Positions 2,421 to 55,970 of a DNA stretch of 64,000 nt are shown here, piece after piece. Numbering within the stretch: position 1 is the stretch's first letter; every line of letters starts with the position of its first letter. This DNA comes from Macrostomum lignano (lineage: Eukaryota): NCBI GenBank assembly GCA_002269645.1, contig NIVC01000109.1, positions 248,001 to 312,000 on the forward strand. The letters are read 5' to 3'. A program made the translations under genes and the position numbers. Under the pieces are notes generated by a model that was not told where the DNA came from, made no database searches, and saw only the letters and a list, made by a program, of their open reading frames with translations.

Positions 2421-18387
<15,967 letters not shown>

Positions 18388-19238: not shown

Positions 19239-28823
<9,585 letters not shown>

Positions 28824-30725: not shown

Positions 30726-33700
30726 TCACTTTAAAGGCCTCTTCAAAGAACGCCCGACTCCTGCAACTTAAATACTCGCAAATTGAAAAAAATGATTGAT
30801 TTACTGAATTGAATTTTAGAAAGTGTCAAATATTTGCGTCCTCACCCAGATTTGGTGGAAAAGATTGTCGGAAAAAAACGATGTCAAGCAGTTTGCTGTT
30901 GAATCCGTTGCTAAGGACGCTAACCTCAGCCTTAAGCCGGTCATTTGTAGTTTCGTGCCGGACGTCGGGTGATTTCACGAGTAAAATGTGCTGGAGGAAC
31001 AGCAGTTGGAAGCATCAAAAGTGAGTAGGCACAGAATTTATGCAGACTCCCAAACCTTATTCAAACTGACCGTACCTTCCTCAGTTCGTGCACGTCGCTA
31101 ACGAAGACAACGCGCTCTCTTTTGATATCGTTGAAGCACGAGAAGTGGACTTTTACTTGACCTTTTTGAATTCCTAAAAAGTTTAAAATATTTTACCTGC
31201 AATTTTAAGTCAATTTTGAGAGTGCCTGGCCTAAAACAAATAGCGACGTTCGATCGTTTCGTAGAATAGATTATTCTCGTACAAATACCCTCGTTGGGTC
31301 TAAAACATTTGGAACTTTGAACATAGTGCTACCATTTCTACTAAAACTTTTCAAGACACTAACTGCCCCGTCCATCTACTACTAGTGGTCCTTGATCAGA
31401 CCTGCGGTGGAGGCCTTAGTGTGGATGGCGATCGTGCAGCCGCCATCCATTGGCGCTTCCGCCGGATTCAACGCGATGACGTCAATGTTCTTCTTTTCCT
31501 CTAAAACACACATTTGTGGAATCATTCTGTACATGAACAGAACAACATGAGTCGATCAGAGTATCACAGAAACTCACTGTCACTGACGATCTTGTCACTA
31601 AACACTGTGCTAAGCAGCCATTCTCGATAGAAAATATCGCAATAGGTGAGCGAGAATGCCAGACGAATCTGAGCCAAGTTGGTCTGGGTGTACTGAGCTG
31701 ACGGCCCTGTAGGACAATCGCTGGGGGTCGGCACATCCCTGAGTCTGGCTTCCATGGCTTTCTCCATGCTCGCTTTGTTCTTCTTTGGCACACAGATCAC
31801 GGACAGCCTGTCGAAGCTGAAAAATTCAAGTGCGTGGGAAACTTCGAGCATGCCTGCAAATCACTATAAGCAACCCTGTACAACTAAACTGGAGCGACTC
31901 TTCCTAGGAAGCCTCAATGTTCAATTCGCTTCACTCCTTAGGAACAAAGCGAGGAGCGTAGCGAACATAGAGGCATCCTTGACTCTTTGCAAATAGTTTC
32001 TTCACTCTAATAGATAAACAACATTTCATTTTAAGTAGAGGCGGGTTGACAGTATATACTAATGCTGATATTGCCAATGAAATGCTAATTCACGACCGTA
32101 GATAGGCTATAATTGACAACAAATTTCATCGTTTCCGAGTCAGTATAAAAAAATATTTCTCTCGAACGAGTTTGTCTATGGTAAAATCCTATTTCCCAAG
32201 CGTAAATGAAAAAAGCTGATCTTTGCGAAATCTGTTTGTTGTTAAATAGGGCTAGCAGCTAAAGCTTGGCGTGCTCTTGAAGAGGCTGGGTGTACCAACT
32301 TTTATTATTTTCACGGCTTGACTCATCGTCAGTCCAGCTTGGTGTACTTGCGGGCGCAAAACTACCCCCCCCCTCAGACAGGGTCGACCGTGGGCTTCCA
32401 AGCTCAACCAGATCAGCACGAACTCCCTAACATGTATTATACATGAGGGCAGCGAACATTTGATCTCACTCCAACGTGCTAAAGTGAGAGCCAGTCGACA
32501 AGCGGTAAACGCACTTCTAGGCTTAGGATCCCCAGAGGCATGATGCCTTTCCAGGCGGTCCATTTACCAGATAGGTTCATCTAGCTCATAGGCAGCTGAT
32601 CTACCTAAATCAACGGTCATCTACCTGAAAAACGGGCAATTGAGTCTCTGGCAGGGACACACTAGAAACTTCAGGGCGAAAACTGTTCCTGTCCCTGAAA
32701 TCTGTTCAGGGAGCACGATTTTGCAGTGGAAACCAGCCCTCCCGTGGCCCAGTCGCTCCTCGTGCCACTCACCAGATGTCCCAAACTGCTTTACCATCCA
32801 ATGCATCAACAGGCTTCTTCAGCTGGAAATATCCGTTACTGCAGTGGTCTCCGTGCAGGTAGTACGGATGAGGAGCATTCTCCTCGGCGCTCACGGTGCA
32901 CACAGTCAGCTGCAGCTGCGAGTGCACAGCTGGGTCGATGTCGCTGACGCGAACTCTCATGAAGCTCTTGTTGCCATCGGTGGAGCTCCTGCCGAGCAGC
33001 AGGCCACCAACTCTGCCGCTGTCCTTCTCGATCTCCGACTCGTAGCGAAATCGGTGATACAGAGCCGGCTGCTCCTCGATGGTCAGCGAAGGCGGCTGCA
33101 ACTCAGCAATGTAGAGGAGCTCAGCAATTCCAGTGTTGACGGGGGGTCCGAGAGGCCCGGAAAAGGTCGATTGATACTAGAAACGTTCATAGAGCAGTTG
33201 TTGTGGTTTTTCATGCACGCTTTGCTAATTTCACATTTTAATTTTTTAGCTTTGTGAAATAATCCACTAATTATAATGCGCTCTGGATGAGGCTTCCATT
33301 CTTGAACCAGCTTCCACTACAGGTCTGCCTGCTTCCACTAAGTTAGAAATATATTGAATACTACTTCTTTTCTGCTCTTTTCTGTGAAAAAACGCAAATG
33401 TAAGGCCAGCAGCAATAACACTGCTTTTGCTGTACGAGATTCCTAACTGACGCTGTTTCTAAAAATAGCTCAGTGCAGTCCCTGTGTGTTCATTTTAAAG
33501 CGCTTTTTTGGCACGGCCAGGGAATTTCCGGGGATTTACTCTCTGCAGATTACAAGGAACTTGCAGCTAACTAATGTTTTAACTTAGATGTCTTTTGTCA
33601 ACCTAAACCAAAATAAGTAGGTTTCATTTCTGATTCCTTACCGAAAAATCAATTTGTATTATCTACAAGAGTCAAGTTAAAACATTACTTTTTGCTCCGG

Positions 33701-34367
33701 CCCTGCTTGGATTCAACCACAGGGACATCAGGGCGGTGATCATGGCCCTCTCAGGCCCTGGCTCCTTTGACAGGCATCGTTATCTTCAGGGAATAGAGAT
33801 CTGCCTCTCCGATGTCGAGAAGGCGAAGCAAGGGCTATCGGGCGAGCGACCATCCACCCTTCTGGACTCTCCAGAGGGGGGCCGCACTGCGGGCACCGGC
33901 ACCACTGGATCTCCTGGCAATCACGCCGCAGCACCAGCTGTCTGTGATTGCCAGGAGCCAGCAGAATGGGCTGCAACGCCTCCTCGCTGTATCCGGCCTC
34001 CCGGAGCCCCCAATGCCCGGAGCTATGTCAAGTTACTTAAAGCTTTCAACTTTTAACTTCAGTTAATAGCTTTCAACAGTTTACTGGAAATATTAATTTT
34101 TTTAGATTTACACAGAGCTACATAAGATTTACACCTGTAAAAAATTTAAAAACTTCATTAAGAAACGTCTTCAAAACCAGTTTTAAATGAAAACTTTTGC
34201 CAAGAAATCAAAATGAATGAGAAGCAATACTTACGATTGTCCACTGGGCCATTGATTATTTATCAAAGCAAACAACAAGGACTTACTAGAATATAACGAA
34301 GTGTTCCTAGTGGTCCTTTACAAACAAATTTTCCTAAACTATCCGATTCACTAGTGTCCATCTCCAT
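30726..34367 (-). CDS. NF-kB/Rel-like protein copy A (RHD + IPT + basic tail, no ankyrin repeats), ~340-366 aa
   Basis: Exons (minus): putative first exon 34367-34287 (MEMDTSES..., uncertain), 33176-32773, 31816-31578, 31500-31402, 31173-31076, 30990-30846, 30760-30726 (TGA). Motifs: LTIEEQP..YHRFRYESE, GLLLGRSSTDGNKSF, PHPYYLHGDHCSNGYF, FDRLSVICVPKK, QIRLAFSL, VFSDKIV, GIQKGQVKVHF, LLVKSPDV, KRPLK-stop. These align by eye with RelA/p50 EQP..RFRYxCE, PHPHELVGKDCRDG, FQNLGIQCVKK, VRLCFQ, VQKDDIEVRF, IVFRTP. Confidence 0.8.
33520..33529. promoter_or_regulatory. Perfect kB-consensus site GGGAATTTCC upstream of the copy A RHD exon
   Basis: Exact match to GGGRNWYYCC. Several degenerate-consensus matches are expected by chance in 64 kb, so function is unproven. 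Confidence 0.25.
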
Positions 34368-34468
34368 GCTAAAATATAATAATAAAACGGATTTTAATCC
34401 GTGGTTGGACCACGGTAAATCCGGGGGAATTCTCGTGGACAAAAGTTGTACGGAGAGACAGAGACGGT

Positions 34469-34688
<220 letters not shown>

Positions 34689-35200
34689 CAAAAAGCGGAC
34701 ACCCGATATGTACACCCGAAAGTAGCTTCCCGACAGAAATAGCACTGTACAGTACAGTATACAGATGCACTGATGCACAGATCAGGGGCTGTTTGTACAG
34801 ATGGAGTTGTGCTTTGAACCGCGGGGAAAGAAAGAAAGCACGACAAATAGTGGCTGGAAGCAAAACTTTTAGGTGAACCAAAACTTGCAGACGAATTTAT
34901 TGTACGGTGGAGGAAAAAGTAAAAGAAAAAAACTGAGCAGCAAACAAGACATCTAGATAGGCTGACCCATCCCACCAAACTCATACTAAATTAGTATTTT
35001 ATTAAGTACTAAATAAACTTCGCTTATGCAAAAACCAAAATCCTATGCATCATTTTTTTCATAGACGCTTGCACATGTACGATCCATGTATAGAGGCTTT
35101 GAATATCAGACTTGAGTCATAATGTTCATAATCAAAGACTGTCTTGAATGAAAGTCAACGCTTATATTTAAGAGCTTGACGTCAGCTGCTTACGTCATCA

Positions 35201-37195
35201 TTATCGTCGCAGCCTCTTCAGAGAAGTTCGGGATTCTGGCAGAAACACAATACAGAGGCTCTCGCTTTTGAATCCGTCGCTATGGACAGTGACCTCGCAT
35301 TTCATCCGGTCCTTGAAACCTGAACTCCTCACATCGGGCGTCCTCACTAGCAAAAAGTGCTGGAAAAAATTAAATTTACTATTAAAAGTGCTCCTGTAAT
35401 GCAGAACATATAAAAGGGTTTGCGTTTACCTTCTTAACCACCTCGACGTCCACCACGAACTCAGTTTGGCTTCCAGTGGCTATATTGGTAACTGCAAAAT
35501 GCACCTTTATGTTACTCCTACAAATGCCTGCAATAGAAGCATTTTAGTTTGAAGGATCAACATTAAATTCAATGTAAAAGTAGCTGAAATATCTTGGATA
35601 GCTTCGAAACAAGGCGCACCTGTTGTAGGGGTGGCGGTGTGGATCGCCAGCATGCTGCCATCCCCCATTAGTACTTCCGTTGGATTCAGACAATCGATCT
35701 CAATTCTCTTTTTTAGATCTGAAATTATTTCGAGATATTGATAAAAAATCATCAACTGAGAGTTGAAGACAGAATCGAGAAACTCACTTTCACCGACGAT
35801 CTCGTCGCTAAACACCGTACTCAGATGCCATTCTCTACCGAAGACATCGCTGAATGAGAGCGAGAACGCCAGACTAATGCGATCCAAGCTTTTGCTTGTG
35901 TATCGAGTTGATGTAGCTGTGGGATCTGAAACAGCACAAAGTTGCCAAAGTTGCAAGCAAAAATTTCTTTTTGATCAAAAACTCTATGTACATCCTTATG
36001 TGACGTGGCACACAAAAGTGGAGGGTCAAACCTCGCGCAGGCACACCGAGACCGAAGGCTTGTTTGCCTTTGTCAGTCAGCAATAGCCACACCCCGTCAT
36101 CTCCCACCACTCTTAGAGCGCACAGACGTTTCTTTAATGCTGCCATTTCTTTTATGGCGACATTTTTCGAGCTATGTCAAGATTTGACGATTTAAATCTT
36201 TATTCGGCTACTTTCCAAAGTAATCTAAATTTAATCTTTAGTTAATAATTAGGAAAGCCACAAGCAGACCAAAAATCAGCCAAAAAGGACTTCAGATTCC
36301 TTTTTTACACCCAGTCTCAACGAAAGGGGCCCAAGAAAAAAAATAGTCAATTTTAAAGTCTCTAAACGAAAAAATGGTGTCACGACACAGCATCTGTTAA
36401 AAAAACCTTTGGTTTAAAAATTAGAGTACTCATTCCTTAGTATATCATTGATTTCTCAGCGAATTCACCAATTCAGAAAGCAAAAATGTCTCACAATCTC
36501 TGAGCTGCGGAAAGCTTCTGCGTCTGTCTTCCAGGCTTTTCTCGATTTCCTTTTTCCTTAACTTTGGCACGCAGATGACAGCCAGTCTGTCAAAGCTGGA
36601 AAATGAGAAATCGTTTTCGTCTTGTATTGTTTAAAATGAAACTACCGGAACTGCTAAAAGAAAAGTGAATATACAACTATATTACGAAAACCATAATTAG
36701 AAGCTTGTTTTAGCTTAGTTTATTGACTCACGTGATCTCCCATTCACCACCAGAATCTCTCAATGCATCAACAGACTTCTTCAGCTGGAAATATCCGTTG
36801 CTGCAGTGGTCCCCGTGCAGGTAGTACGGATGAGGAGCCTTCTCCTCGGCGCTCACGGTGCACACAGTCAGCTGCAGCTGCGAGTGCACAGCTGGGTCGA
36901 TGCCGCTGACGCGAACTCTCACGAAGCTCTTGTTGCCATCGGTGGAGCTCCTGCCGAGCAGCAGGCCGCCAACTCTGCCGCTGTCCATATGGATATCCGA
37001 CTCGTAGCGATATCGGTAGAACCGAACCGGCTGCTCCTCGATGGTCAGCGTCGGCGGCTGCAGCTCCTTCAGGCTGAGGATCTGGGGCTCCTCTTGAAGC
37101 AGAAAGTCTCTGCCAATCACCTGGGTCGTCGTTGCCTTCAAAACGAGTAGAGGCTGGCTTGAACTTTCCATTTTTACATCTCGAAACGTCAGCAT
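35201..37195 (-). CDS. NF-kB/Rel-like protein copy B (RHD + IPT + NLS), ~352 aa
   Basis: Exons (minus): 37195-36732 (in-frame ATG; a further 5' exon is possible), 36595-36495, 35925-35788, 35718-35620, 35527-35430, 35359-35201 (TAA); phases consistent. FYRYRYESD loop, FDRLAVICVPKLRKKEIEKSLEDRR, LDRISLAFSL, LLVRTPDV, ends SLKRLRR-stop. Confidence 0.85.
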
Positions 37196-37899
37196 TGATC
37201 GATGCGTTTCAGCGGCATTAAAAAGTAATCTTGCCTACTTGTTACTGACGATGATGCCGAAGGCATTGTACCAGGGTACCCGCAACACTCCAGCAAATAT
37301 TAATGACATTATCACTGGTAACTCTATCTAATCGTCCTTTCAAATATACATCACATGGTGGCACAGCTACATGTAAGTTATAAACCCTGATAATTAAGTA
37401 GCTGAAGGCCTGTCATGAGTAAGAGTACATTTTTGAATTTTTGAATTTCATAAACCCTAGCCTAGAACAGTTATGCAATATCGAGTCGAAAAAGAGGTCT
37501 GGATAATGCATGACCTGTCTTAGATCACATGAAACAATTAGCTAGCTCTTGGCCAGGTGGAGTATCAACCTGGAAATTGGTTGAAAACTATTATCCAGCT
37601 ATTATATTGGCAGAAAGCAACTCACCATCTTGTCTGTAAATTTCAATAAGAAACAAATTTAATAGATTTCACGAGCAATTGATCTTGATAGTCAGGATAA
37701 GGTACCAAAATGCATTTTATGCCCGCAGGGCGAAGTACCTTGTACGATTGTGAATTGCAGTGTAGTGGCCGTAGGAGCGCACCCCACTGCGAGCCTTTCA
37801 CGAACGCTCGTAGCAAACATTGTCCCTTCTTTCAACTTCTATAAATAAATTTGACGTAAGAATTAAATTCTGGTGTGCACAACAAGTGTGCCGCACGCT

Positions 37900-38570
37900 G
37901 GAAAAATTCTGCCAGAGCAACAAACATAACCGCGGCGCAGACGGGCAGAGGACCACGCTCGCACGCTGCTTGCGGTTCACCTCGGCGGTCTTGTGCCCCA
38001 CGTGAAAGAGGACCTCCGACGGCGCAGAGGACTTGCCTGGGCGGCCTTCCATTCGATTTGGGTCGTCCTCCAGTCCGAAGCGCTGCCCGACCGCCAGAGA
38101 GCTCGGCTGTGGCCTGGCGGTGGTCGAAACCGTCCTGCATACTAAGCCGAGACGTGGACGCTGACGGCTACGCTAATCACGGCTGCTACGCGCGGCCTTT
38201 CGAGCTGTCGAGAGCGTCGGGAAAGAGGCTCTGTACCTCTGTACAGCTTATAGAATTTCGAGTGCAATTTACAGGTGGATTCTGGGCAGCTGCAGCGCCC
38301 GTCCATCATCCATCATCCATCATCATCGGCAACTTCAACTTGCGGGCCACGTGATCCAGTCCGAGGGCTACTGCCCCCAACCTGTTCAGGACGCCCTGCT
38401 GCACATCTTGCAGGGCCCGTTCAGGCAGGCTCAGGCCCAAACCCGCCGATACATGAACGTGGACTGCTTGCTGTGCGACGCAGGGGCACCCGACACTGCC
38501 AAAGGGGCGGACTTTCGAATTCCGCTCTCAAGCTCTGCGGCGCGCCATCTGACGCACCCTCACTGTGACC
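37900..38570 (+). mobile_element. Degenerate RTE-type non-LTR retrotransposon fragment (RT C-terminal region)
   Basis: Frameshifted translation LGGLVPHVKEDLRRRRGLAWAAF..VLQSEALPDRQRARL..VVETVL...ETWTLTATL and RQLQLAGHVIQSEGYCPQPVQDALL...RY..VDCLLCDAG, the pattern of RTE/LINE ORF2 ends. Confidence 0.7.
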
Positions 38571-39198
38571 TTACATGCGGGGCCGCGAATTTATCTCCAT
38601 CAGCATCACTATTGGAATTATCCCTGCATCACCACAGGGATCTCCATCAGCATCACCATTGGAATTAACCCTGCATCACTATTGGGATCTCTTTTGCCGA
38701 AAAAGAAATTAAACCGAAATTCACTCGAACTTTATTGAAGGATCGATTGATTGATTGATCGAACTTGATTGATTTACCACTACTTGATTGATTGAAGGAT
38801 TGAAGGAAATCCTGGCTATAAGATTTGTGTTGGGTAGTGGTAAATAAGCCTGTCATAAAACAGAAGAAGGATTGATTTTTCGTGATAGCGCTTTCTTTAG
38901 AAAATCGGCACAATCGAACTCACGATGGTCAAATTTACGATCAAATTAATACACGAGCCATTGATACATGAGTCATGCAGAAAATCTTTAGGCAGAAAGA
39001 ACATCTCCGTGATTTCGAACCAGTGCAAAATAATATTATAATAAGAATATTAAAAACCTGTTTATTAACTATTAAAAAACTTTAAAGGCTAAAAGCCTAC
39101 TGAGAAACAAAACACTTTTTTCGCAGCTTATAGAATTTCGAGTGCAATTTACAGGTGGATTCTGGGCAGTTACACAAAGCTTCAGCTCATTAGCTGTG

Positions 39199-40911
39199 TC
39201 AAATTGGCCGCGCTCTCTTCACAGCAGTTCCGGATTCTGCAACAATCCAAAAGTGTGTTGAAAAATAAATTTTAAAGCTCGCAAAGGAAAAACTAAATGT
39301 TTGCTAACTTTGAAACTTTCTTAAAAACATAACGTGGAGGTGTTCCGGTGTTCCACTTAAAGCTGTTGGGCAGATCTCTTAGAAACACAATGCTCCGCTC
39401 CTCACTCTTCCATTCATGGCTGTGGACAACAACCAAACATTTCTGCCGTTCATTGACAGTTGCGTTCCTCAAATCGGGAGTCCTCACAAGCAGTAGATGC
39501 TGGAAATTAAACGTGTCAAAAGGAATTAAAATTACACAACTTAAGCAACGAATGAACACTAGCTACATCTTCATAAAATAGTCCTTTCTGTACTATTTAG
39601 ATACGAGCGTAGAAGCTAAGCATATTACCTTTTTAACTTCTTTGACATCGGCAACGAACTCAGTTCGGTTTCCCGTGGTTTCATTGGTGACAATGAAATG
39701 TACCTTTATGTCACTCTTCTGAATGCCTGAAATTCGAACAGTAGGAATCACGGTATTTATTTTGTGCGAGAATTTCAGCAGAAAATTAGTTATTAAATAG
39801 TGTTGAAACCGAGCGCACCTGTTGTAGGGGTGCTGGTGTGAATCGCCAACATGCTGCCGCCCTCCTTTGGCACTTCCGCTGGGTTCACACAATCGACCTG
39901 AATAAGCTTTATTTCCTCTAAAAATTGTGAAACGCATTAACTAATAACCAATATTGACTGAGAGTTCAGAACGAAACTGAGACACTCACTCTTACTGACG
40001 ATCGGGTCGCTGAACACAGTGCTCAGCTGCCCTTCTCTACCAAAGAAATCGACGAATGAGAGCGAGAACGCCAGTCGAATGCGACCCAAGTTTTTGGTTG
40101 TGTATTGAGTTGATGGAGCTGTGGGACCTGAAACAGCGCCAAATTTTTATGTGAGCTTCATTAAATTGGACTTCAACGGCGAAAACGAGACGATATTAAA
40201 AGATAAATGCTCACAATTTGGAAGCTGAGGAACATTTCTGCGTCTGGCTTCCATGTGGTCATCGATGTGCTTCTTTGTGGTTTGAGAGACAGCCAGTCTC
40301 TCAAAGCTGAAGAGTCAATCATGAATTTTCGCTGCTTTAATTCGAGAATAAAACTGACTGTACACTCAAGTTCGACAATTAATAAATTAAATGTTGTCAC
40401 CGAAAAATATTGAACTGACGTTTCATGTGTCACCATGAATTTTTACTCACGTGATCTCCCATTCACCACCAGAATCTCCCAATGCATCAACAGACTTCTT
40501 CAGCTGGAAATATCCGTTGCTGCAGTGGTCCCCGTGCAGGTAGTACGGATGAGGAGCCTTCTCCTCGGCGCTCACGGTGCACACAGTCAGCTGCAGCTGC
40601 GAGTGCACAGCTGGGTCGATGCCGCTGACGCGAACTCTCACGAAGCTCTTGTTGCCATCGGTGGAGCTCCTGCCGAGCAGCAGGCGGCCAAGGTGGTAGC
40701 TTGCTTGCTGAGACTCGTAGCGAAATCCGTAGAACCGAGCCGGCTGCTCCTCGATGGTCAGCGACGGCGGCTGCGGCTCTTTCAGGCTGAGGATCTGGGG
40801 CTCCGCTTGAAGCAGAAAGTCTCTGCCAATCACCTGAGTTTCGTCTGAAGCTGCTACAGTTCCAGAATATTCGCAGTACTCCACTTCACTTGCTACGATT
40901 TCATTTAGAAG
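39199..40911 (-). CDS. NF-kB/Rel-like protein copy C (RHD + IPT + NLS), at least 363 aa; start codon exon not resolved
   Basis: Exons (minus): 40911-40451, 40306-40215, 40127-39990, 39917-39819, 39726-39629, 39499-39334, 39236-39199 (TGA); all phases consistent. FYGFRYESQ loop, FERLAVSQTTKK, LGRIRLAFSL, VFSDPIV, GIQKSDIKVHF, LLLVRTPDL, VKRARPI-stop. Confidence 0.85.
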
Positions 40912-42164
40912 CTAAAATCGAATCGGTAAGATCGGAAAGAGTGTTGTTTTTCGACCAGGGTAATAACCCACCTTTATTAAAATTTACAGCAAAACTTCTA
41001 TTTTTACGTGGTGGCAATATTAAACAGAGCCAAAGTTGCAGATAAGATGGCTTGATTTAATGGATTGCCTTCTTGAAAAGAACTGATGCCCGGCATTGCG
41101 CCAGGGTACCAAAACCCCTCCTGTGTACATTTATTACCATGGTAGCTCTATCTAATCGTCCTTTCAGATGCATATACGTACAAAGTACATCGCATGGTGG
41201 CACAGCTAAGCTATAAATCCTGATAATTCAATAGCTGAAGGCCTGTCACAAGTGTGCGAAGGAGGATCAGTGTGAAGCTTTGACAGTGTGAAGCTTCTGA
41301 ATTCTAGTAACCCTAGAAAATGTCAAGCTTTTTCATGTAGCAAATGAGGTCTGGATAACGCATGACCTTGTCCAGGGACTACTCAAACACTACTCAAACA
41401 TGTTTGAGTAGTCCCTGACCTTGTCTTGGGAAATCACATGAAATAATTAGCTAGCTCTTGGGCAGGAGAAGTATCAACTTGGAAAAGTTTCTTTAAAATT
41501 TTTAAAGCTATTAGTTTGGCAGGAAGCAACTCACCATTTTGGGCTCGTAAATTTTAAGTTTGGCTTTGATAGTTAGGATAAGGTACCAAAGATGAATCTT
41601 TATGCCCTCAAGGCGAAGTAAGTACCTTGTGCGAGCTACCATTGAGTGTACGAGTGTGAATGTGCAGTGTACTGGCCAGAGCAGCGCGCCACTTCTATAA
41701 ATAATCTTGACGTAAAAATTAAACTTCGATTTGCACATGTGTGCCGTACGTAGGACACTTAGTTACGAGATGAGCAAACAAAAATAACGAATTTGTGCAT
41801 ACTTCTTGTATATTTCTTCCATGCAATTCAACCCAGAAGCGTCATAATTTTTGTAGGAGAGAATATTATGAGAATATTATAAATTTTACCAGCAACTTAA
41901 TACACGAATGCTGGCAATTGCTACTCACAAAATATTTTAGGCAAAAAACGGCTCAATGATTTAGGCAACAATAAGTTCCAATCTACGAGAAATGGAACCA
42001 ACGAAAATATGCAATAATGAGAGTGTTAATAGTCAGCTCATTTATTATTTGAAAAATTCAAGTCATCAAAGCAATTTTTCATGGCTTTTAAACTTTCGGA
42101 AACGAGTGCAATTTACAGGCGGATTCTGGGCAGTTTCACGAAGCCTTCAGTTCATCAGGAAATG

Positions 42165-42954
42165 TCAACTTGGCGGCGCTCTCTTCACAGCAATTCCGGA
42201 TTCTGCAACAATCCAAGAGTGTATTTAATAATTAATTTAAAAACTCGCGAAGAATAAAGCACAATTTTTCTAACTTAAAATTTTCTTGAAGCATAAGAAC
42301 GTACTTGGCGGTGTTTCGGGGTTCCTCTTAGAGCTGTTGGGCAGATCTGTTTCAAACTGAATGTTGAGCTTTTCACTCTTCCCTCCGTGGCTGTGAACAA
42401 CTACGAAGCCTTTAAGTCGTTCATTGGCAGTTGCGCACCTCACGTCGGGTATCTCCACCTTCAGTAGGTGCTGGAAGTCAAACGTGTCAAGAGCATTTTA
42501 CAATTTAACTACTTGTCGGTGACAGACAAGGAAAACGCCAGACAGTAACAACATCAACTGGTAAATTGAAAAGCACGTGAAGGCATTTAAAGTTTCATTA
42601 CTAAAGGATCTTGCGAAGCCTATACGAGCGTAATAGTCAGGCAAAATTTTTCTTTATGTACTGGAAGATAAGCATATTACCTTTTTAACTTCTTTCACGT
42701 CGGCAACGAACTTAGTTTCTGTGGCTTCATTGATGACCGTAAAATGAACCTTGATGTCACTCTTCTGAATTCCTGAAATTCAAATAGCGTGTTTAGCAGC
42801 ATGTATTTAGCGTGATTGATTAATTCAGTTGAGATAGTTTTGAAACCGAGCGCACCTGTTGTAGGGGTGCTAGTGTGGATCGCCAGCATGCTTCTGCCCT
42901 CCATTAGCACTGTTGCTGGGTTCAGACAATCGACCTTAATAGTCTTATTTTCTT
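42165..42954 (-). pseudogene. NF-kB/Rel-like copy D: IPT and NLS exons only; RHD exons absent where the Helitron array begins
   Basis: Exons 42954-42856, 42772-42681, 42470-42305, 42202-42165 are open and orthologous to the last four exons of copy C (GIQKSDIKVHF, HLLKVEIPDV, VKRAPPS-stop). No RHD exon is recognisable between 42954 and the Helitron end at 43292. Confidence 0.75.
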
Positions 42955-43354: not shown

Positions 43355-44320
43355 GAATAGACCCATGCTTCCAGTAAGCCTTGATGTCTCAGTAACTCCC
43401 CCAGCTAAGCCTTGAAGTCTAAGAAATTTCCCCACTAAGACTTGACATCACAGCAATTCCCTTAGCTGCAAGCCTTGACATCTCAGCAATTCCCCTAGTA
43501 AGCCTTGACATCTCAACAATCTCCCCGTAAGCCTTGACATCCAGTGATTCCCCCTGTAAGCCTGGACATCTCAGTAATTCTCCATAAGCCTTGAAATCTC
43601 AGCAATTCCCCCAGTTGTAAGCCTTGAAATCTCAGCGATTCCCCCAGCAATAAGCCTTGACATGCATCTCAGCAATTCCCCCAGCTGTAAGCCTTGACAT
43701 CTTAGCAATTCCTCCCAGTTGTAAGCCTTGACATCCCAGCAATTCCCCCAGTTGTAAGACTTGACATCTTAGCAATTCCTCCTAGTTGTAAGCCTTGACA
43801 TCCCAGCAATTCCTTCAGCTGTAAGCCTGTCATGGTCTTAGGTCTTTAGTCTTAGCAATTCCTCCCAGCTATAAGCCTTGACATCTCAGCAATTCCCCCA
43901 GCTATAAGCCTTGACATCCCAGCAATTCTCCCAGCTGTAAGCCTGGACATCTCAGCAATTCTTCCAGCTGTTAGCTTTGACGTCTTAGCAATTCCCCTAG
44001 TTGTAAGCCTTGACATCCCAGCAATTCTCCCAGCTGTAAGCTTCGACGTCTTAGCAATTCCCCAAGTTGTAAGCCTTGACATCCCAGCAATTCTCCCAGC
44101 TGTAAGCTTTGACATCTTATCAATACCCCCAGCTGTAAGCCTTGACGTCTTAGCAATTCCCCCAGCTGTAATCCTTGACATCCCAGCAATTCCCTCAGCT
44201 TGTAAGTCCTGAAAAAGACATCTTAGCAATGCTCCCAGTAACCCTTGGCATCTCAACAATCCCCCATAAGCCTTGACATCTCAGCAGTTCTCCCAGTAAG
44301 TCTTGACATCTTCGCAATTT
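43355..44320. repeat. ~30-33 bp minisatellite GTAAGCCTTGACATCTCAGCAATTCCCCCA(GCT) inside H1
   Basis: About 30 copies. Confidence 0.95.
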
Positions 44321-44439
44321 CCCTATGAATTTTTTGTTTTACAAGATGCTTCGTTTGTGCTTGAAATTATGCCTCTTTTATGTTTAGCATGATGCTTTTT
44401 CACATCACATGGTGGTCCTTTTTGTAAGCTTTAATCATG

Positions 44440-44530
44440 AAGATTCAAAAATACTAACAAATTATTCTAATGAACTTCGAACTCAGTTGCTGCTTTAGCA
44501 GCTCTGTCTGTTTGCATCTAGGCTAGCTTT
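44440..44530 (-). ncRNA. tRNA-like Pol III module in H1 (putative)
   Basis: TAGCCTAGATG (A-like) ... CTGCTAA loop ... GAGTTCGAAG (B-like), T5 downstream. Confidence 0.3.
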
Positions 44531-44608
44531 CATTTATATGTGCCCATACATTCATTGATATATGGCCATACTACAATTCAACACTCACAGCACGTCAGTT
44601 AGAGTCAA

Positions 44609-45053
44609 AGATACTAGAATAACTAGATGGTCCACTCTGGCATATATACTTGGCAAAACAGCTTTCTACTTTCAGTTCAGTAGCAAAGAAGAATACATAA
44701 GCTATTTTATAAGAATAAGGCAGCTGAGATGACTTCGATAAGTTTAGAAGCCAAGCTTGCAGACGTAAACAGCTTGCTAATTAGTTCAGCCAAAATGTAC
44801 ATTAGCCACTGAAATGTACAAGGCAGATTTAGGCTGGAACAACCGAAGAAGGTAATAAAATTAGGTCGCGGACGGGGGTAGAGGTTCTATGAGGAGTTTG
44901 AGGGTTTAATAGCTTGGGGGGTAAGAGCCAATACGAGCTAAATAAGCTTTGTCTTTAAAAATACATTAAAATGCTTCAGTTTAACTTACTACTGAACTGA
45001 AAGTAGCTGGCACGCAAATGTGCCGAGTGGCCCATCTAGTTATTCTAGTATCT
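44609..45053. mobile_element. MITE (~445 bp) nested in H1
   Basis: Perfect 22 bp TIR AGATACTAGAATAACTAGATGG / CCATCTAGTTATTCTAGTATCT, extended imperfectly, plus a subterminal IR CTACTTTCAGTTCAGTAG (44666-44683 vs 44989-45006). H1 sequence resumes on both sides. TSD not resolved. Confidence 0.8.
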
Positions 45054-46019
45054 GTGGTTAGAGTAAAAGTCATGACGTAATGTATTTCTCAGTCAGTCAG
45101 TGTCTGTTACCATTAAAGTTAGCAATTCAATTACGCAATATCAATCAAGTCTTGTGCTATATACTTCAGACTGGCGCAATTCAAGTCAGTGTGAACATTC
45201 AGCAATGTAAAAAACGACAATAAGTAAAAAGTTTGTTGTGATGCAATCTTTATCAGAATCAGAATTTAGTCAGTCAGTTTTGTCTCTAGCATTCTTACAA
45301 TACATTTAAAGTCGAAAAGTTTACTTGACCTTTGCAAAAAAGCATATCCTTACGACACAGAAAAAAAGCATGTTTTTCGAATATTTAATCCCTTTAGCAT
45401 TGAGCAATTTCTTAGCCACGACCCCTGTACCGTCACGGAAAAATTTCTGATCGAATGGTGCAAGTTTGGTGGAAATCGGTTGAGCCGTTTTTTCTATTAT
45501 CGATCGCACAGACAGACAGACAGAGACAGCTCAGATTTAGATATATACTAGCAATCTAGCGCCCCCCTTCGGGGTGGCCAATAAGCAAGGGACGAATCCT
45601 TTAAAATGAAAAGAATTCTTAGGGAGGGGGGCTAGGAATCGAATTCTCATTTTAATTCTGGGGCTTATGTGCTAATAAAACATGCTTGTGTAGAACTGAC
45701 AATTCAACCATACTTGCCTTCTTTCAAAGCAATAGCGTACTACTTCTGTAGCGGTGCAAGCAGTACGCTCGGCAATGGCTGGAAAAGCAGCTACAGCAAA
45801 AAATATTGTTACCCAAAGGCAACACAGTTGCCTATCATGCAAAGGCATCACTGGTGTTAAACACCAATTCCTTCTTCACTTTTTAAAATCACCTTATTCA
45901 TGTAAAATTGTCACGGACAATGATATTTGCTATGAATGTCTTTTTTTCTAAAATTAACAAACCGACAACAAAATATAGCTTTCACAAAAATAACAGACAT
46001 TCCACCTAAATAGAAAATA

Positions 46020-47950
46020 TTCCCAAGACAGCAAGTATCCCTCCAGATAGCAAGCACCCCCTCCAAAAGTAAGCAACAACAGATAGCAAGCATCCCTTAG
46101 TACACGTAGCAAGCTTCACCCCAGATAGCAAGCAACCTGCACATAGCAAGCATCGCAAGATACTGTAGAAGCATCCACCCAGATAGCAAGCATCCTGCAG
46201 ATAGCAAGAATCCCTGAATAGCAAGCATCCCTGGATAGAAAGAATCCCATACATGTAGCCAAGCTTATCAAGTGCTGTAATCCTTGGTTTGCTAAGTGCA
46301 ATAATCCTTGGCTTATCAAGAGCAATAATCCTTTGCTTATCAAGTGCAGTTATCCTTGGTTTATCAAGTGCAGTAATCCTTGGTTTATCGAGTGCAGTAA
46401 TCCTAGGTTTGCCAAGTGCAATAATCCTTGGCTTATTAAGAGCGATATGTCTTGGTTTATCAAGTGCAGTAATCCTTGGTTTATCGAGTGCAGTAATCCT
46501 AGGTTTGCCAAGTGCAATAATCCTTGGCTTATCAAGCGCAGTAATCCTTGGCTTATCAAGCGCAGTAATCCTTGGTTTATTAAGAGCAATAATCCTTGGT
46601 TTATCAAGTGCAGTAATCCTTGGTTTGCTAAGTACAAAAATCCTTAGCTTATTAAGAGCAATAATCCTTGGCTTATTAGGAGCAGTAATCCTTGGTTTGC
46701 CAAGTGAAATTACCCTTAGCTTATTAAGAGCAATAATCCTTGGTTTATCAAGTGCAATAATCCTTAGCTTATTAAGAGCGATAATTCTTGGTTTATCAAG
46801 TGCAGTAATCCTTTGCCTATCAAGCGCAGTAATCCTTGGTTTATTAAGAGCAATAATCCTTGGTTTATCAAGAGCAATAATCCTTGGCTTATCAAGAGCG
46901 ATTTGTCTTGGTTTATCAAGTGCAGTAATCCTTGGTTTGCCAAGTACAAAAATCCTTAGCTTATTAAGAGCAATAATCCTTGGCTTATTAGGAGCAGTAA
47001 TCCTTGGTTTGCCAAGTGCAATATCCCTTAGCTTATTAAGAGCGATAATTCTTGGTTTATCAAGCGCAGTAATCCTTGATTTGCCAAGCGCAGTAATCCT
47101 TGGTTTATCAAGTGCAGTAATCCTTGGTTTGCCAAGTGCAATAATCCTTAGCTTGTTAAGAGCGATAATCCTTGGTTTATCAAGTGCAGTAGGTTTATCA
47201 AGTGCAGTAGGTTTATCAAGTGCAGTAATCCTTGGTTTGCCAAGTGCAAAAATCCTTAGCTTATTAAGAGCAATTATCCTTGGCTTATAAAGAGCAATAA
47301 TCCTGGGTTTATCAAGTGCTATAATCTTTGGTTTATCAAGTGCAGTAATCCTTGGTTTATTGAGAGCAATTATCCTTAGCTTATTAAAAGCGATAATTCT
47401 TGGCTTATCAAGTTCAGTAATCCTTGGCTTATCAAGCGCAGTAATCCTTGGTTTATTAAGAGCAATAATCATTGGTTTATCAAGTGCAGTAATCTTTGGT
47501 TTATTACGAGCAATAATCCTTGGTTTATCAAGTGCAGTAATCCTTGGCTTATTAAGAGCAATAATCCTTGGTTTATCAAGTGCAATAATCCTTGGTTTAT
47601 CAAGTGCATTAATCCTTGGTTTATCAAGAGCAAAAATTCTTGGTTTATCGAGTGCAGTAATCCTTTGCCTATCAAGTGCAGTAATCCTTGATTTGCCAAG
47701 CGCAGTAATCCTTGGTTTATCAAGTGCAGTAGGTTTATCAAGTGCAGTAATCCTTGGCCTATTAAGCGAAATAATCCTTAGCTTATTATGAGAAATAATC
47801 CTTGGCTTATTAAGAGCAGTAATCCTTGGTTTGCAAGTGCAATAATCCTTGGTTTATCAAGTGCAGTAATCCTTGGTTTATTAAGAGCAATAATCCTTGG
47901 TTTATCAAGTGCAGTAATCCTTGGCTAATCAAGTGCAGTAATCCCTGGTT
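46020..47950. repeat. 18 bp (GATAGCAAGCATCCCCCA) then 24 bp (TATCAAGTGCAGTAATCCTTGGTT) minisatellites inside H2
   Basis: 18-mer ~46020-46250; 24-mer ~46260-47950, about 70 copies. Confidence 0.95.
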
Positions 47951-48006
47951 TATCAAACACGGTGATCTAAAGGTTTTTAATTAGTCTTTTAATAAAAGCT
48001 TTCAAT

Positions 48007-48100
48007 AAAAAAAATTACATTACTACTTTTACACTACTTAGATTCGAACCCTGGTCGCTGCATTAGCAATCCAGTCTATTCAGCTCTAGGCTAGCTCTAA
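48007..48100 (-). ncRNA. tRNA-like Pol III module in H2 (putative)
   Basis: TAGCCTAGAGC ... CTGGATTGCTAATGCAG ... GGGTTCGAATC, then T8 about 25 nt downstream. Confidence 0.4.
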
Positions 48101-48701
48101 TTGAAGTTATAAATGAATTTGTAGCACTTATATAATTCAACACTCACACCAAGTCAATTGAGTAAAAGTTACACAAAGCAGTTATGACATAATCAATTTT
48201 TTAGGCAAGTCAGTACCAGTCTCTATTAAAGTTAGCATTGTGGTTAAGCAATATAAATCAAGTATTGTGCTATGCTTCCACACTCAATCTTGTGACGCAA
48301 TTCAATTGAGTGTCAAAATTCAGCCAGTACACAGACAATAAATAAAAAGCCTATTGTGATGCAATCTATTTCAGAATCAGAATTCAACCAGTCAGTTTTT
48401 TCTCTAGCATTCTTACAATGCATTTCAAGTCGAAAAGTTTGCTTGACCTTTGCAAAAAAGTATGTTTTTCGAATATTTAATGCCTTTAGCATCGAGCAAT
48501 TTCTTAGCCACGATGCATGTACCGTCACGGAATAATTTCTGATCGAACAGTGCAGGTTCGAAGAAAATCGGTTCAGCCGTTTTTGCTAAAATCGATCACA
48601 CACACACACACGCACGCACGCACATACAAACAGACCATTTTTAGTATATTAGACAAGCAAGATTTTCATTTTTAGTATATTAGAGATTTAGTATATTTAG
48701 A

Positions 48702-51700
48702 CTAGCAATCTTCGCCCCCCGATGGGGGACATCTGGATAGAATCCTTGTTCTTTACAAATAAGAAATAGACCGCGAAATAAAGCCTTCATAAAAAACAAC
48801 AGACATTCCCTCTAAAAAAACATCCCAAGACAGCAAGCATCCTCAGACAGCATTCAAGCATCGATGCCCAGATAGCAAGCATCCCCCAGACCGCCAGCAA
48901 CCCCTGATAGCAAGCATAACCTGGATACAAATGGTCCTGATAGATAGCTAGCAACCGCCTCTCAGGTACCCTCCACCTCCCAAGGGCAAGCATCTCCCAA
49001 TAGCAAGCATCCCCCAGATAGCAAGCATTCCCCAGATAGCAAGCATTTCCCAGATAGCAAGCATCCCCAAGATAGCAAGCATCCCCCAGATAGCAAGCAT
49101 CCCCCAGATAGCAAGCATACCTTATATAGCAAGCATCCCCCAGATAGCAAGAATCCCTCAGATAGCAAGCATCCCCCAGATCGCAAGCATCCCCCAGACC
49201 GCAAAATACCCCAGATAGCAAGCATAACCTGGATACAAAGAGACCTTATGGATATCTAGCAACCCCCTCTCAGAGAGCATCTCCCAATAGCCAGTTACCC
49301 CAGTAGCAAGCATCCTTCCGATAGCAAGCATCCCCCCAATAGCAAGCATCCCTCGGATAGCAAGCATCCCCCTGATAGCAAGCATCCCCCTGATAGCAAG
49401 CATCCCCCTGATAGCAAGCATCCCCCTGATAGCAAGTATCCATCCTTAAAAGCAAGCATCCACTAGAGAACAAGTAGCTAGTGCAACAATTTTCTTAGCT
49501 TTATAGTGGCTCCATTTCGTTTGGCATGACACTTCTTTTTATGTTTAAAACGGTGTCTCTTTTATGTTTGCAATGGTGTCTCTTTAATGTTTGACATGGT
49601 GGCTCTTCTTTGTTTGACATGGTGTCTCTTTTATGTTTGACATGGAATCACCTATATGTTTGACAAGGTGGCGCTTTAATGTTTTACATGGAGTCAGTCA
49701 CGTATATGTTTGACATGGTGGCTCTTTTATGTTTGATATGTAGGCTCTTTACTGTTCGACATGGTGGCTCTTTTATGTTTGGCATGGTGGCGCTTTTATG
49801 TTTCACATGGTGGCTCTTTATTGTTCGACAAGGTGGCTCTTTAATGTTCGACATGGTGGCTCTTTTATGTTTGGCATGGTGGCTCTTTCATGTTTGACAT
49901 GATAGTTCTTTTATGTTTGACATGATAGCTCCTATATGTTTGACATGGTAGGTCTTTATTGTTTAACATGGTAGCTCTTTTATGTTTCACTCAGTGGCTC
50001 TTTAATGTTCGATATGGTGGCTCTTTAATGTTCGACATGGTGGCTCTTTTATGTTTGGCATGGTGGCTCTTTAACGTTCGACATGGTGGCTCTTTTATGT
50101 TCGACATGGTGGCTCTTGAATGTTTGACATAGCGGCTCTTAAATGCTTGACATGGTAGGTCTTTTATGTTTGACTTGGTGGCTCTTTAATGTTTGACATG
50201 GTGGCTCTTTTATGTTTGGCATGGTGGCTCTTTCATGTTTGACATGATAGCCTCTTTCATGTTTGACATGGTAGGTTTCTAATGTTCGACATGGTGGCTC
50301 TTTAATGTTCGCCACGTTTGTTTTCAGGTTTTTCATGTTTGAGTCACGTATATGTTTGACATGGTGGCTCTTTAATGTTCGCCACGTTTGTTTTCAGGTT
50401 TTTCATGTTTGAGTCACGTATATGTTTGACATGGTGGCTCTTTATTGTTTGACATGGTGGCTCTTTAATGTTTGATATGGTGGCTCTTTTAGGTTTGTCA
50501 TGGTACCAAATAAAGCCTTTACAACAAACATTTAAGAGCCACCATGTCAAACATATATGTGACTTTATGTTAAACATTAAAGAGCCACCATTAAGAAAAT
50601 AAATCTGGCATGATGTTAAACGTTAAAGTGCCACCATATCGAAAATTAAAGAGCCACCATGTCTAACAGTAAAGAGCCACCATGTCGAACATCAAAGGGC
50701 CACCATGTAGAACATTAAAGAGCCACCATGTCGAGCATTAAAGAGCCACCATGTCAAACATAAATCTTGCATGATGTCAAACATTAAAGTGCCACCATAT
50801 CGAACATTAAAGAGCCACCATGTCTAACAGTAAAGAGCCACCATGTCGAACATTAAAGGGCCACCATGTCTAATATTAAAGAGCCACCATGTCAAACATT
50901 GAAGAACCACCATGTCGAACATTAAAGAGCCACCATGTCAAAAATAGAAGAGCCACCATGTCAAACATAGAAGAGCCACCATGTCTAACATTAAAGAGCC
51001 ACCATGTCGAACATTAAAGAGCCACCATGTCTAATATTAAAGAGCCACCATGTCTAACAGTAAAAAGCCACCATGTCGCCTGCTATCTGGGGGTGCTTGC
51101 TATTTGGGAGAGCCTGCTATCTGGGGGTGCTTGCTATTTGGGAGAGCCTGCTATCTGGGGGTGCTTGCTATCTGGTGGTGCTTGCTATCTGGGGGTGCTT
51201 GCTATCTGGAGGTGCTTGCAATCTGGGGTGCTTGCTATCTGGGGGTGCCTGCTATCTGGGGGTGCCTGCTATCTGGGGGTGCTTGCTATCTGGGGGGTGC
51301 CTGCTATCTGGGGGGTGCTTGCTATCTGGGGGTGCCTGCTATCTGGGGGGTGCTTGCTATCTGGAGGTGCTTGCTATCTGAGGGGATGCTTGCTGTCTTA
51401 GGATGTTTTCTTTTTACATTGCACTTCATCTGAGCAGTTTTTCTATTGACTATGTGAAGGCTTTGTTTGGCCATCTTATTGATACTTGTAGAGAACAGAG
51501 ATTCTATCCAGATGTCCCCCATCGGGGGGCGAAGATTGCTAGTCCTTCCTATATACTAAAAATGAGTTGTCTGTATGTGGGTAGGTATGCGATAGATTTC
51601 AGAAAAAATGACATAATCAATTTCTCAGTCAGCCAGTATCAGTCTCAATTTAAGTTAGCAATATGGTTACGCAATTTAAATCAAGTCGTTTGTGCATTTC

Positions 51701-52009
51701 TTTGGCACTGTTTTCAACTTTTTGTGATGCAATCTTTATCAAAATCGGACTTCAGCCAGTCAGTTTTTTCTCTAGCATTCTTACAATGCATTTCAGGTCG
51801 AAAGAGCTGCTTGACCTTTGCAAAAAATCATGTTTTTCGAATATTTAATCCCTTTAAAATTGAGCAATTTCTTAGCCAAGATGCATGTACCGTTCCAGGA
51901 AAATTTCTGATCAAATGGTGCAAGTTTGAATAAAATCGGTTGAGCCATTTTTTCTGAAATCTATCGCATACCTACCCATATACAGACAACTCATTTTTAG
52001 TATATAGGA
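48702..52009 (-). mobile_element. Non-autonomous Helitron H3, interrupted by an inverted Helitron segment (~50520-51604, +)
   Basis: 3' end GATGTCCCCCATCGGGGGGCGAAGATTGCTAG (CTAG 48702-48705); 5' end TCCTATATACTAAAAATGAG at 52009. The same 3'/5' junction occurs on the + strand at 51511-51604 (CTAG 51539-51542). Confidence 0.75.
48820..51395. repeat. 18 bp and 22-23 bp (ATGTTTGACATGGTGGCTCTTTT) minisatellites in both orientations
   Basis: 18-mer 48820-49470; 23-mer 49550-50500; reverse 23-mer 50530-51075; reverse 18-mer 51078-51395. Confidence 0.95.
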
Positions 52010-52154
52010 CTAGCAATCTTCGCCCCCCGATGGGGGACATCTGGATAGAATCTCTGTTCTCTACAAGTAACAAAAAGACAGCCAAAAAATCCTTCACAAA
52101 GACAACAGACAAACTGCTCAAATGAAGTGAATTGCAATAAGAAATCTTCCCAAG

Positions 52155-55100: not shown

Positions 55101-55830
55101 GGTGGCTCTTTTAGGTTTGAAATGGTGGCTCTTTAATGTTCTACATGGTAACTCTTTTATGTTTGATACGGTGGCTTTTTAATGTCTGACATGTTGTCTC
55201 TTTTATGTTTGACATGGTGGCTCTTTTATGTTCGACATGGTGGCTCTTTAATGTTCGACATGGTGGCTCCTTTAGGTTTGAAATGGTGGCTCTTTAATGT
55301 TTGACATTGTGGCTCTTTTATGTTCGACATGGTGGCTCTTTTAGGTTTGACATGGTGGCTCTTAAATGTTCGACATGGTGGCTCTTTAATGTTTCACATG
55401 GTGGCTCTTTAATATTTGACATAAAGTCACATATATGTTTGACATGGTGGCTCCTAAATGTTTGACATGGTGGCTCTTTATGTTTGACATGGTGGCTCTT
55501 TTATGTTCGACATGGTGGATCTTTTTTGTTCTACATGGTAACTTTTTTATGTTTGATACGGTGGCTTTTTAATGTCTGACATGTTGGCTCTTTTATGTTT
55601 GACATAGTGGCTCTTTAATGTTCGAAATGGTGGCTCTTTAATGTTCGAAATGGTGGCTGTTTTATGTTTGACATGGTGGCTCTTTTATGTTTGACATGGT
55701 GGCTCTTAAATGTTTGACATGGTGGCTCTTTAATGTTCGACATGGTAGCTCTTTAATGTTCGACATGGTAGCTCTTTTATGTTTGACATGGTAACTCTTT
55801 TATGTTCGATATGTTGGCTCTTCTATGTTT
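52155..55830. repeat. 18 bp array (52155-52730) and ~3 kb 22-23 bp array (52830-55830) inside H4
   Basis: Direct reading. Confidence 0.95.
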
Positions 55831-55886
55831 GACATTGCGCTTCTTTGATGTTTAGCAGTTTTGTTGTGTTTTTAAGGTGTTTTAAT

Positions 55887-55970
55887 AAAAAAAATCTTTT
55901 TGCACTACTAAGATTCGAACCCAGGTCGCTACATTAGCATTCCAGTCTGTTCGCATCAGGGCTATCTCTT
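55887..55970 (-). ncRNA. tRNA-like Pol III module in H4 (putative)
   Basis: TAGCCCTGATGC ... CTGGAATGCTAATGTAG ... GGGTTCGAATC, then T8. Confidence 0.4.

Follow-up and report, generated by a model that had tools for sequence, protein, structure and literature searches.

What kind of genes are encoded by a run of short open segments on the minus strand of a Macrostomum lignano contig, and are they pared-down NF-kB genes? The stretch in question (NIVC01000109.1 positions 248001-312000, assembly GCA_002269645.1; hereafter the window, 64 kb in full) presents, in its open reading frame (ORF) listing and in three-frame translation, four series of such segments at 30.7-43.0 kb. The original prediction took them for four minimal, highly divergent genes encoding p50-like factors, i.e., proteins that stop right after the nuclear import motif. 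Our analysis indicates that these are Rel-homology genes, and that a tandem array of Rel-class (Dorsal/RelB/c-Rel-like) genes, known so far from M. lignano alone, is likely to have its far end in this region. The sequences are already public as unnamed, uncharacterised proteins, and what we present is therefore a characterisation lead and not the discovery of new sequence.

Gene models and the Rel homology region

Gene models were obtained by enumerating GT/GC..AG junctions and scoring the joined peptides against related proteins. This yielded complete open coding sequences for three copies (A, B and C) and a fourth copy, D, represented by its last four exons only (Table 1). Every junction in the four models is of the GT..AG type with a pyrimidine-rich acceptor, and intron phases match across the copies. 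The D model is identical at 130 of 130 residues to GenBank PAA90470.1 (Mlig016889g2, deposited as 'partial'), which independently confirms its junctions and its stop, and the B model has the same exon structure as the GenBank protein P0001 (Mlig012767g1, 333 amino acids) on contig NIVC01000475.1. The four-copy cluster on the minus strand was thus borne out, with its exons in place, its joins and its open frames. The claim of shared intron positions held in part: A has a single exon (31816-31578) in place of exons 2 and 3 of B and C, while B is without the last small intron present in A, C and D and hence has no separate final mini-exon. The open frame of A comprises 339 codons and is 97% identical to the UniProt fragment P0009; proteins of the window family span 333-446 amino acids. 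Their C-terminal ends read ...GVGRSLKRPLK (A), ...SRTSLKRLRR (B), ...SGTAVKRARPI (C) and ...SGIAVKRAPPS (D), each followed directly by the stop codon, precisely the tails that had been foreseen.

Table 1. Exon coordinates of the four Rel-homology copies and of the homogenised tract, in window positions
Feature	Coordinates	Strand	Remarks
Copy A	33176-32773, 31816-31578, 31500-31402, 31173-31076, 30990-30846, 30760-30726 (including stop)	-	splice model, six exons
Copy B	ATG 37628-37626, 37135-36732, 36595-36495, 35925-35788, 35718-35620, 35527-35430, 35359-35201 (including stop)	-	splice model
Copy C	ATG 41537-41535, 40911-40451, 40306-40215, 40127-39990, 39917-39819, 39726-39629, 39499-39334, 39236-39199 (including stop)	-	splice model
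Copy D	42954-42856, 42772-42681, 42470-42305, 42202-42165 (including stop)	-	splice model, IPT domain and tail
Homogenised exon-1 tract	B 36723-37116; A ~32798-33104; C 40440-40836	-	encodes LTIEEQP...GYFQLKK, first half of the DNA-binding domain

The Pfam profile RHD_DNA_bind (PF00554) was matched by A, B and C over positions 1-166 of 169 with expect (E) values of 2.8e-16, 6.9e-13 and 4e-13, respectively, above the 27-bit curated cutoff; D lacks this domain entirely. The second domain fell below the sequence cutoff of its own profile, and its assignment therefore rests on predicted structure. An AlphaFold model, built on a 76-sequence alignment for P0001 (the counterpart of B, 11 residue differences from window B), reached a mean predicted local distance difference test (pLDDT) score of 86.6 and a predicted template modelling score of 0.72, with low confidence in the N-terminal 20 and the last 13 residues and a pLDDT of ~90 or higher over most of residues 220-320, the IPT part. 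When this model was compared with the PDB using Foldseek, RelA, RelB and c-Rel came first, with E values between 4e-20 and 7e-17 and alignments exceeding 300 columns, meaning that both Rel homology domains match. They were followed by p50/p52 and then by NFAT1/TonEBP (1e-15 to 4e-13), with template modelling scores of 0.35-0.45 for NFAT vs 0.5-0.56 for Rel/NF-kB chains. By the modelled structure, an IPT-type dimerisation domain is present, in agreement with the two-domain Rel homology genes originally proposed.

A family profile searched against solved structures recovered RelB (7e-11), c-Rel (8e-9), p65 (1e-7) and the Dorsal homologue Gambif1 (2e-3), aligning with RelB up to chain residue 285 of 296. 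The same profile matched p50 at E 0.02-0.3 and over profile positions 83-171 only, i.e., the first part of the domain, and recovered no NFAT chain at E<=10. A HMMER search of 1.84 billion representative proteins returned 101 matches, the closest of which are M. lignano 'RHD domain-containing' or 'hypothetical' proteins (all 20 looked up among the top 21, as well as P0028). These were followed, at E ~1e-10 and weaker, by vertebrate and insect RelB, Dorsal, Dif and c-Rel, and every named match from outside Macrostomum that was looked up is a RelB, c-Rel, Dorsal or Dif. Together, the profile, fold and HMMER searches identify the family as Rel/NF-kB-type and not NFAT, as had been argued from its motifs. 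Judged by these sequence and fold comparisons, the window family is closest to class II Rel; the tree described below covered Rel/Dorsal and M. lignano proteins only.

Of the residues expected to touch DNA, the recognition-loop Arg, Arg, Tyr and Glu hardly vary over the 76 aligned sequences. The loops of A (HRFRYESE) and B (YRYRYESD) retain Arg, Arg, Tyr and Glu/Asp, and the window-family loop has Ser in place of the redox-sensitive Cys of the Rel consensus (R-x-x-R-x-R-Y-x-C-E-G), followed by five inserted residues. The loop of C, RFYGFRYESQQASYHLG, has Arg changed to Gly, Glu changed to Gln and two residues deleted, and exon 2 of C has lost three residues (ICV) in a core strand. Turning to the dimer interface, the strand KKHLLxVRTPD is invariant across six aligned relatives encoded at other loci (KKHFLLVRTPD in window B), and the PHP..L.G..C motif and the RTP strand are present in the window family. 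In all four copies the Rel homology region closes with a basic cluster, within a tail predicted to be disordered, and two of these clusters, KRLRR and KRARP, fit the import consensus K-K/R-x-K/R and are putative import signals.

Protein ends

We then considered where the proteins begin and end. At the C-terminus, six deposited relatives stop 1-6 residues past the basic motif (KRARPS/KRARPI/KSLRR), and an AATAAA signal lies 118-197 nucleotides (nt) 3' of the stops of B, C and D (197 nt for B, 132 nt for C). None of the reading frames of the 64-kb window contains an ankyrin core motif; no Pfam domain, ankyrin included, was matched in the ORFs between the copies or downstream of A, and none of the proteins gave an ankyrin match. 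In the place where a C-terminal transactivation domain would follow the Rel homology region, there are 1-6 residues after the basic motif. Given the stops of the relatives, the AATAAA signals and the lack of Pfam or ankyrin matches downstream, a continuation of the coding sequence in ankyrin or activation exons is unlikely. The window proteins also show no glycine-rich region.

At the opposite end, the window family carries an acidic/hydrophobic extension, with motifs such as GRDFLLQEEPQIL and EAEYFEYSGS, that is predicted to be disordered (pLDDT 51-59). Similar motifs are found in a sister set of M. lignano proteins, in which a 20-60 amino acid acidic/hydrophobic tail (DDLLGFLYD, DLSDLLTSF, EDFMAFL) follows the import motif. 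Owing to this resemblance, the absence of an activation module from the window family is not established; of the claim that these genes have neither an IkB-like nor an activation module, the first half agrees with the lack of ankyrin motifs in the window and the second goes too far.

The translation starts differ between the copies. In B, an upstream exon has ATG as its last three bases, directly before the donor GTGAGT (37195 and 37171 are alternative in-frame ATGs). In C, an upstream exon homologous to that of B also ends in ATG and joins position 40911 in frame; the first coding exon of both thus supplies the methionine alone. We had considered the spliced leader as the source of the N-terminal methionine of P0001 and rejected it, as the deposited model uses a small upstream exon of this same kind (ATG followed by GTGAGT), which is also found in the window. 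Likewise, an upstream exon of the MQQLQ...STQA type (that of P0003-P0006) was sought for C by lax tblastn and not found in the window, C having the B-like ATG exon. Exon 1 of A contains no in-frame ATG and begins directly after a TTCTAG acceptor, and no upstream coding exon was found for it. In A and C, the in-frame stop ahead of exon 1 is the splice acceptor itself (TTCTAG at 33177-33179 and TTTTAG at 40912-40914, minus strand). The spliced leader of M. lignano ends in ATG, and 30% of its genes are trans-spliced (PMC8629364). A leader-derived ATG at exon 1 of A or C would be in frame, and A could hypothetically start by this route; the four copies, on one strand and 1.2-2 kb apart, may also form an operon-like arrangement. 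As a start for D, the leader ATG was discarded, being out of frame (MKKIRLLRSIV, then a stop). D has no start codon. No exons for its first, DNA-binding domain were found anywhere in the window. D is a 5'-truncated remnant, although it was deposited as a partial gene model.

Array, family and molecular evolution

The four copies are part of a larger family. On the same contig, at record positions ~351-389 kb, there are further genes of 359 and 395 amino acids, separated from the four copies by satellites and a Helitron. Contig NIVC01000475.1 holds a colinear array that is 94-98% identical to that of the window, with at least five more copies upstream of the B counterpart. As M. lignano has been called a hidden polyploid (PMC10468722), this second array is probably a homeologue or second haplotype. 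Its A counterpart is intact with identical splice sites, the splice sites of both A and B being intact on both contigs, while in its C counterpart 10 additional nt in exon 6 put the tail out of frame. At the position of the truncated D, NIVC01000475.1 has a full-length copy (79% identical to D), and intron 1 of its A counterpart carries a ~1.9-kb insertion (L001 15625-17578), so that the two arrays differ in structure.

Among the best matches, the M. lignano label was found on at least 16 clusters at 50% identity. The sister set (P0011, P0013, P0018-P0021) consists of proteins of 340-390 amino acids that are 25-29% identical to the window family and nearest to c-Rel/p65; P0021 itself gave no match against solved structures. 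Five sister-set models have consecutive GenBank accessions on one other contig, and two more contigs carry near-identical proteins from these clusters. In a neighbour-joining analysis against 63 Rel/Dorsal proteins, all 13 M. lignano proteins formed one group in 200 of 200 bootstraps, at a mean distance of ~2.1 substitutions per site vs 1.05 among the other Rel/Dorsal proteins, a result limited by long-branch attraction and by the absence of other flatworms from the set. As first suggested, and as judged from the HMMER matches, the array copies and the single M. lignano clade, the expansion looks lineage-specific, with the array seen so far only in M. lignano.

The copies do not diverge evenly along their length. 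Exon 1 is 94-100% identical in DNA among A, B and C, while the adjoining introns are at ~40% and not alignable. Between B and C, identity is 98-100% over ~250 nt and drops to ~40% just beyond the exon-intron boundary; the tract shared by A and B stops ~40 nt inside exon 1. Between copies, the synonymous substitution rate (dS) is 0.05-0.13 in the exon-1 core vs 0.46-1.25 in the remaining coding sequence, where, outside the converted tract, the ratio of the nonsynonymous to the synonymous rate (dN/dS) is 0.33-0.51. The near-zero dS and the pair-specific tract ends point to gene conversion and not to protein-level constraint alone. The sole divergent patch within the tract is the recognition loop, and exon 1 of every NIVC01000475.1 copy matches A, B and C at 88-96%. 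Conversion confined to an exon, together with a divergent recognition loop, makes for a neat case of concerted evolution. It also qualifies the description of these genes as highly divergent, which is apt in relation to other animals (20-26% identity) and not for exon 1 among the copies themselves. Opposite exon 1, the plus strand has antisense ORFs at 32640-33257, 36806-37150 and 40435-40848 (205, 114 and 137 amino acids), with no Pfam match, which probably arise from sequence composition and from the homogenisation of the exon.

Selection tests against the NIVC01000475.1 counterparts, all on small counts, separated the copies further. A differs from its counterpart by 15 nonsynonymous and 14 synonymous changes (dN/dS 0.31, binomial P 0.002) and B by 11 and 6 (dN/dS 0.54, not significant), with 33.5 and 9.5 for C (dN/dS 1.06). 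These comparisons suggest that A is under constraint, as is, less clearly, B; C evolves neutrally and is most readily seen as a copy whose frame is open but which is in decay. On this evidence A appears functional, and B probably is too. The original count of three open genes is therefore right as to their frames and overstated as to function, given the neutral evolution, damaged loop and frameshifted counterpart of C. In the UniProt model P0008, pieces of 37975-38467 are joined to the first exons of C and B; this seems to be an artefact of gene prediction on an older assembly.

The surroundings of the array are repeat-rich. Starting next to D, at 43374, satellite arrays with periods of 17, 18, 23, 24 and 33 nt occupy ~14 kb (43374-57884), and some of those of the 23-mer lie in opposite orientation (49537-50504 vs 50525-51077). 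Beyond them, on the minus strand at 57930-62552, is a Helitron-type element (Helitron_like_N, E 2e-52; PIF1 helicase, E 6e-33), whose ORFs are split over several frames, so that the element is probably decayed. A (GA)116 microsatellite sits between A and B (34453-34684), and two GC-rich segments with ORFs on both strands (37832-38668 and 33736-34066) gave no Pfam match. On the plus strand there is a class C (metabotropic-glutamate-like) receptor gene (19239-26822; ANF_receptor and 7tm_3), interrupted by microsatellites, and, further upstream than the receptor gene, an exon with a cadherin domain (3417-3875). An Rfam scan of the window gave no match.

Rival readings and known systems

If the region is indeed the end of a Rel-class array, a complete gene encodes a short N-terminal extension that is acidic/hydrophobic and predicted to be disordered, then the DNA-binding and IPT domains of the Rel homology region, and lastly, directly before the stop, a basic cluster at the place where Rel proteins have their import signal. 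Such proteins would most likely form homo- and heterodimers via the IPT domain, bind kappaB-like DNA via a recognition loop making Arg-x-Arg-Tyr...Glu contacts and enter the nucleus by means of the C-terminal basic cluster, with partner proteins or the N-terminal extension supplying any activation. The array itself would have been shaped by duplication, exon-1 gene conversion, intron loss or gain, and decay, and D would be a remnant that is still transcribed. A more ambitious version, which we hold to be rather a long shot, is that the genes make up a combinatorial set of Rel dimer partners that lost the C-terminal tail and have an activation-like motif at the N-terminus. Conversion would then fix the scaffold while the loop and the dimerisation domain diversify; IPT-only transcripts like that of D would perhaps be dominant-negative, and A would perhaps start at a spliced-leader ATG in an operon-like setting. 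If true, this would be a flatworm-specific route to many DNA and dimer specificities from one array.

Several observations weigh against the assignment to a working Rel-class array. The Pfam profile RHD_dimer (PF16179) reached 15.4 bits at best, in C, vs a cutoff of 28.3, and gave nothing for A, B and D, so that of the two Pfam checks proposed at the outset one came out positive (RHD_DNA_bind) and the other below cutoff. The basic motifs of A (KRPLK) and D (KRAPPS) fit the classical import consensus poorly. The start of A depends on a splice from a spliced leader or from an upstream exon, both hypothetical, and there is no AATAAA within 400 nt past its stop. In the gene table for window 32165-52952, D is the only gene called; deposited support exists for B at the parallel locus, and for A and C it consists of older, automated UniProt fragments (P0009, P0008, P0002). 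A search for transcript contigs with the proteins P0001, P0003, P0004, P0006, P0007 or P0010 gave GenBank genome contigs and none derived from RNA. The Mlig gene models themselves are, we presume, derived from transcriptome assembly.

Some of these points would also fit a reading in which the window copies are mostly non-functional edge duplicates and the working genes are those on NIVC01000475.1 or at 351-389 kb. The calling of the truncated D alone, the state of C (dN/dS at neutrality, damaged loop, core-strand deletion and frameshifted counterpart), an A with neither an identifiable start codon nor a canonical poly(A) signal, and the ~14 kb of satellites (43.4-57.9 kb) and the Helitron (57.9-62.6 kb) that flank D would all be expected of it. 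Yet A and B are open, with intact splice sites on both contigs, the constraint on A is significant, the dN/dS between copies is 0.33-0.51, and the counterpart of B is a deposited gene model; we regard this reading as a real but minor possibility. We think it unlikely, too, that the genes encode p50-like factors without any activation module, serving as constitutively nuclear repressors or obligate dimer partners in an immune pathway, which is how they were originally interpreted. In architecture the comparison with p50 is sound: the basic cluster is the last element of the proteins, no tail follows it, the window has no ankyrin exons, and the sister set keeps a tail after the import motif, so that the window family really did lose something. 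In sequence it fails, the affinity being with class II Rel (RelB, c-Rel and p65 at E 7e-11 to 1e-7 vs 0.02 for p50) and not with p50/p52, and no glycine-rich region being seen. Activation domains are usually disordered, and the N-terminal extension, predicted to be so, resembles the sister-set tails. Nothing ties the genes to immunity either; next to them lie the class C receptor gene, the cadherin exon and the Helitron.

The two remaining alternatives concern the extent of the proteins and their class. That the true proteins are longer, their transcripts being spliced beyond the stops to exons for an activation domain or ankyrin repeats, would account for the missing AATAAA after A. We find it very improbable in view of six independent deposited models that end alike, a deposited D that ends at the predicted stop, AATAAA signals less than 200 nt after B, C and D with the next copy 1.2-2 kb downstream, and the absence of any Pfam domain between the copies or 3' of A and of any ankyrin motif in the window. 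That these are NFAT/NFAT5-type genes is already close to refuted. The fold search does find NFAT structures (E ~1e-15), and the Glu-Ser-Glu that follows the loop Tyr is faintly like what we take to be the Glu-Thr-Glu of NFAT (loop RAHYETEG); however, by sequence no NFAT chain appears at E<=10 while RelB is at 7e-11, the RFRY motif is Rel-type, and by fold NFAT ranks below every Rel/NF-kB chain.

Recent surveys disagree on the Rel genes of flatworms. In a 2024 survey, p50/p105 is not listed for Platyhelminthes, nor is the phylum named among those with c-Rel (PMC11432056), whereas seven highly divergent Rel-homology genes, with long branches and no clear NF-kB orthologue, were reported in Schmidtea mediterranea (PMC13563047, 2026). 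The general view, cited in the original prediction, that NF-kB is lost or hard to detect in several flatworms is thus dated in part. Our literature search, which included the Mlig gene identifiers, found no paper on Macrostomum Rel genes. The present analysis shows that M. lignano carries a sizeable Rel-class family cut down to the bare Rel homology region. The species is amenable to RNA interference and transgenesis. It is also said to serve regeneration and stem-cell studies (PMC10468722), and it lets one ask how a Rel protein acts when it has neither ankyrin inhibitor sequences nor an activation domain at the C-terminus, and whether Rel factors have any part in flatworm immunity.

With class II Rel proteins (RelB, c-Rel, RelA/p65 and Dorsal/Dif/Gambif1), which provide the best sequence and fold matches, the window family shares the loop Arg-x-Arg-Tyr...Glu, the PHP..L.G..C motif, the RTP strand and the basic cluster. 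It differs from them in its low identity (20-26%), in a branch about twice the vertebrate-insect spread, in having no C-terminal activation domain, and in a loop with Cys replaced by Ser and five extra residues; the motif RRPS, which we take to be the protein kinase A site of p65, has no counterpart in the window family by eye. Processed p50/p52 are made of a Rel homology region and an import signal and nothing more, an architecture like that of the window proteins with their putative import signal, but the window genes encode this short form directly and not by processing, and their match to p50 goes no further than E 0.02. Class I NF-kB precursors (p105/p100/Relish) have an ankyrin part that is lacking here, as is, to the eye, the glycine-rich region. 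A Rel homology protein without a C-terminal ankyrin-repeat domain is known from Nematostella vectensis, whose Nv-NF-kB is its single NF-kB-like gene (PMC5700166); the ankyrin-less coding is common to both, whereas the window genes form a multi-copy array nearest to the Rel/Dorsal class. The Schmidtea genes can be likened to them by description only, as neither a tandem layout nor a stop after the import motif is described there. Closest to home, the sister M. lignano set comes from the same species as the window family and likewise has short proteins, with a similar loop (HRFRYE.E), and differs from it in that its proteins open with the Rel homology region at the N-terminus and carry a tail beyond the import motif.

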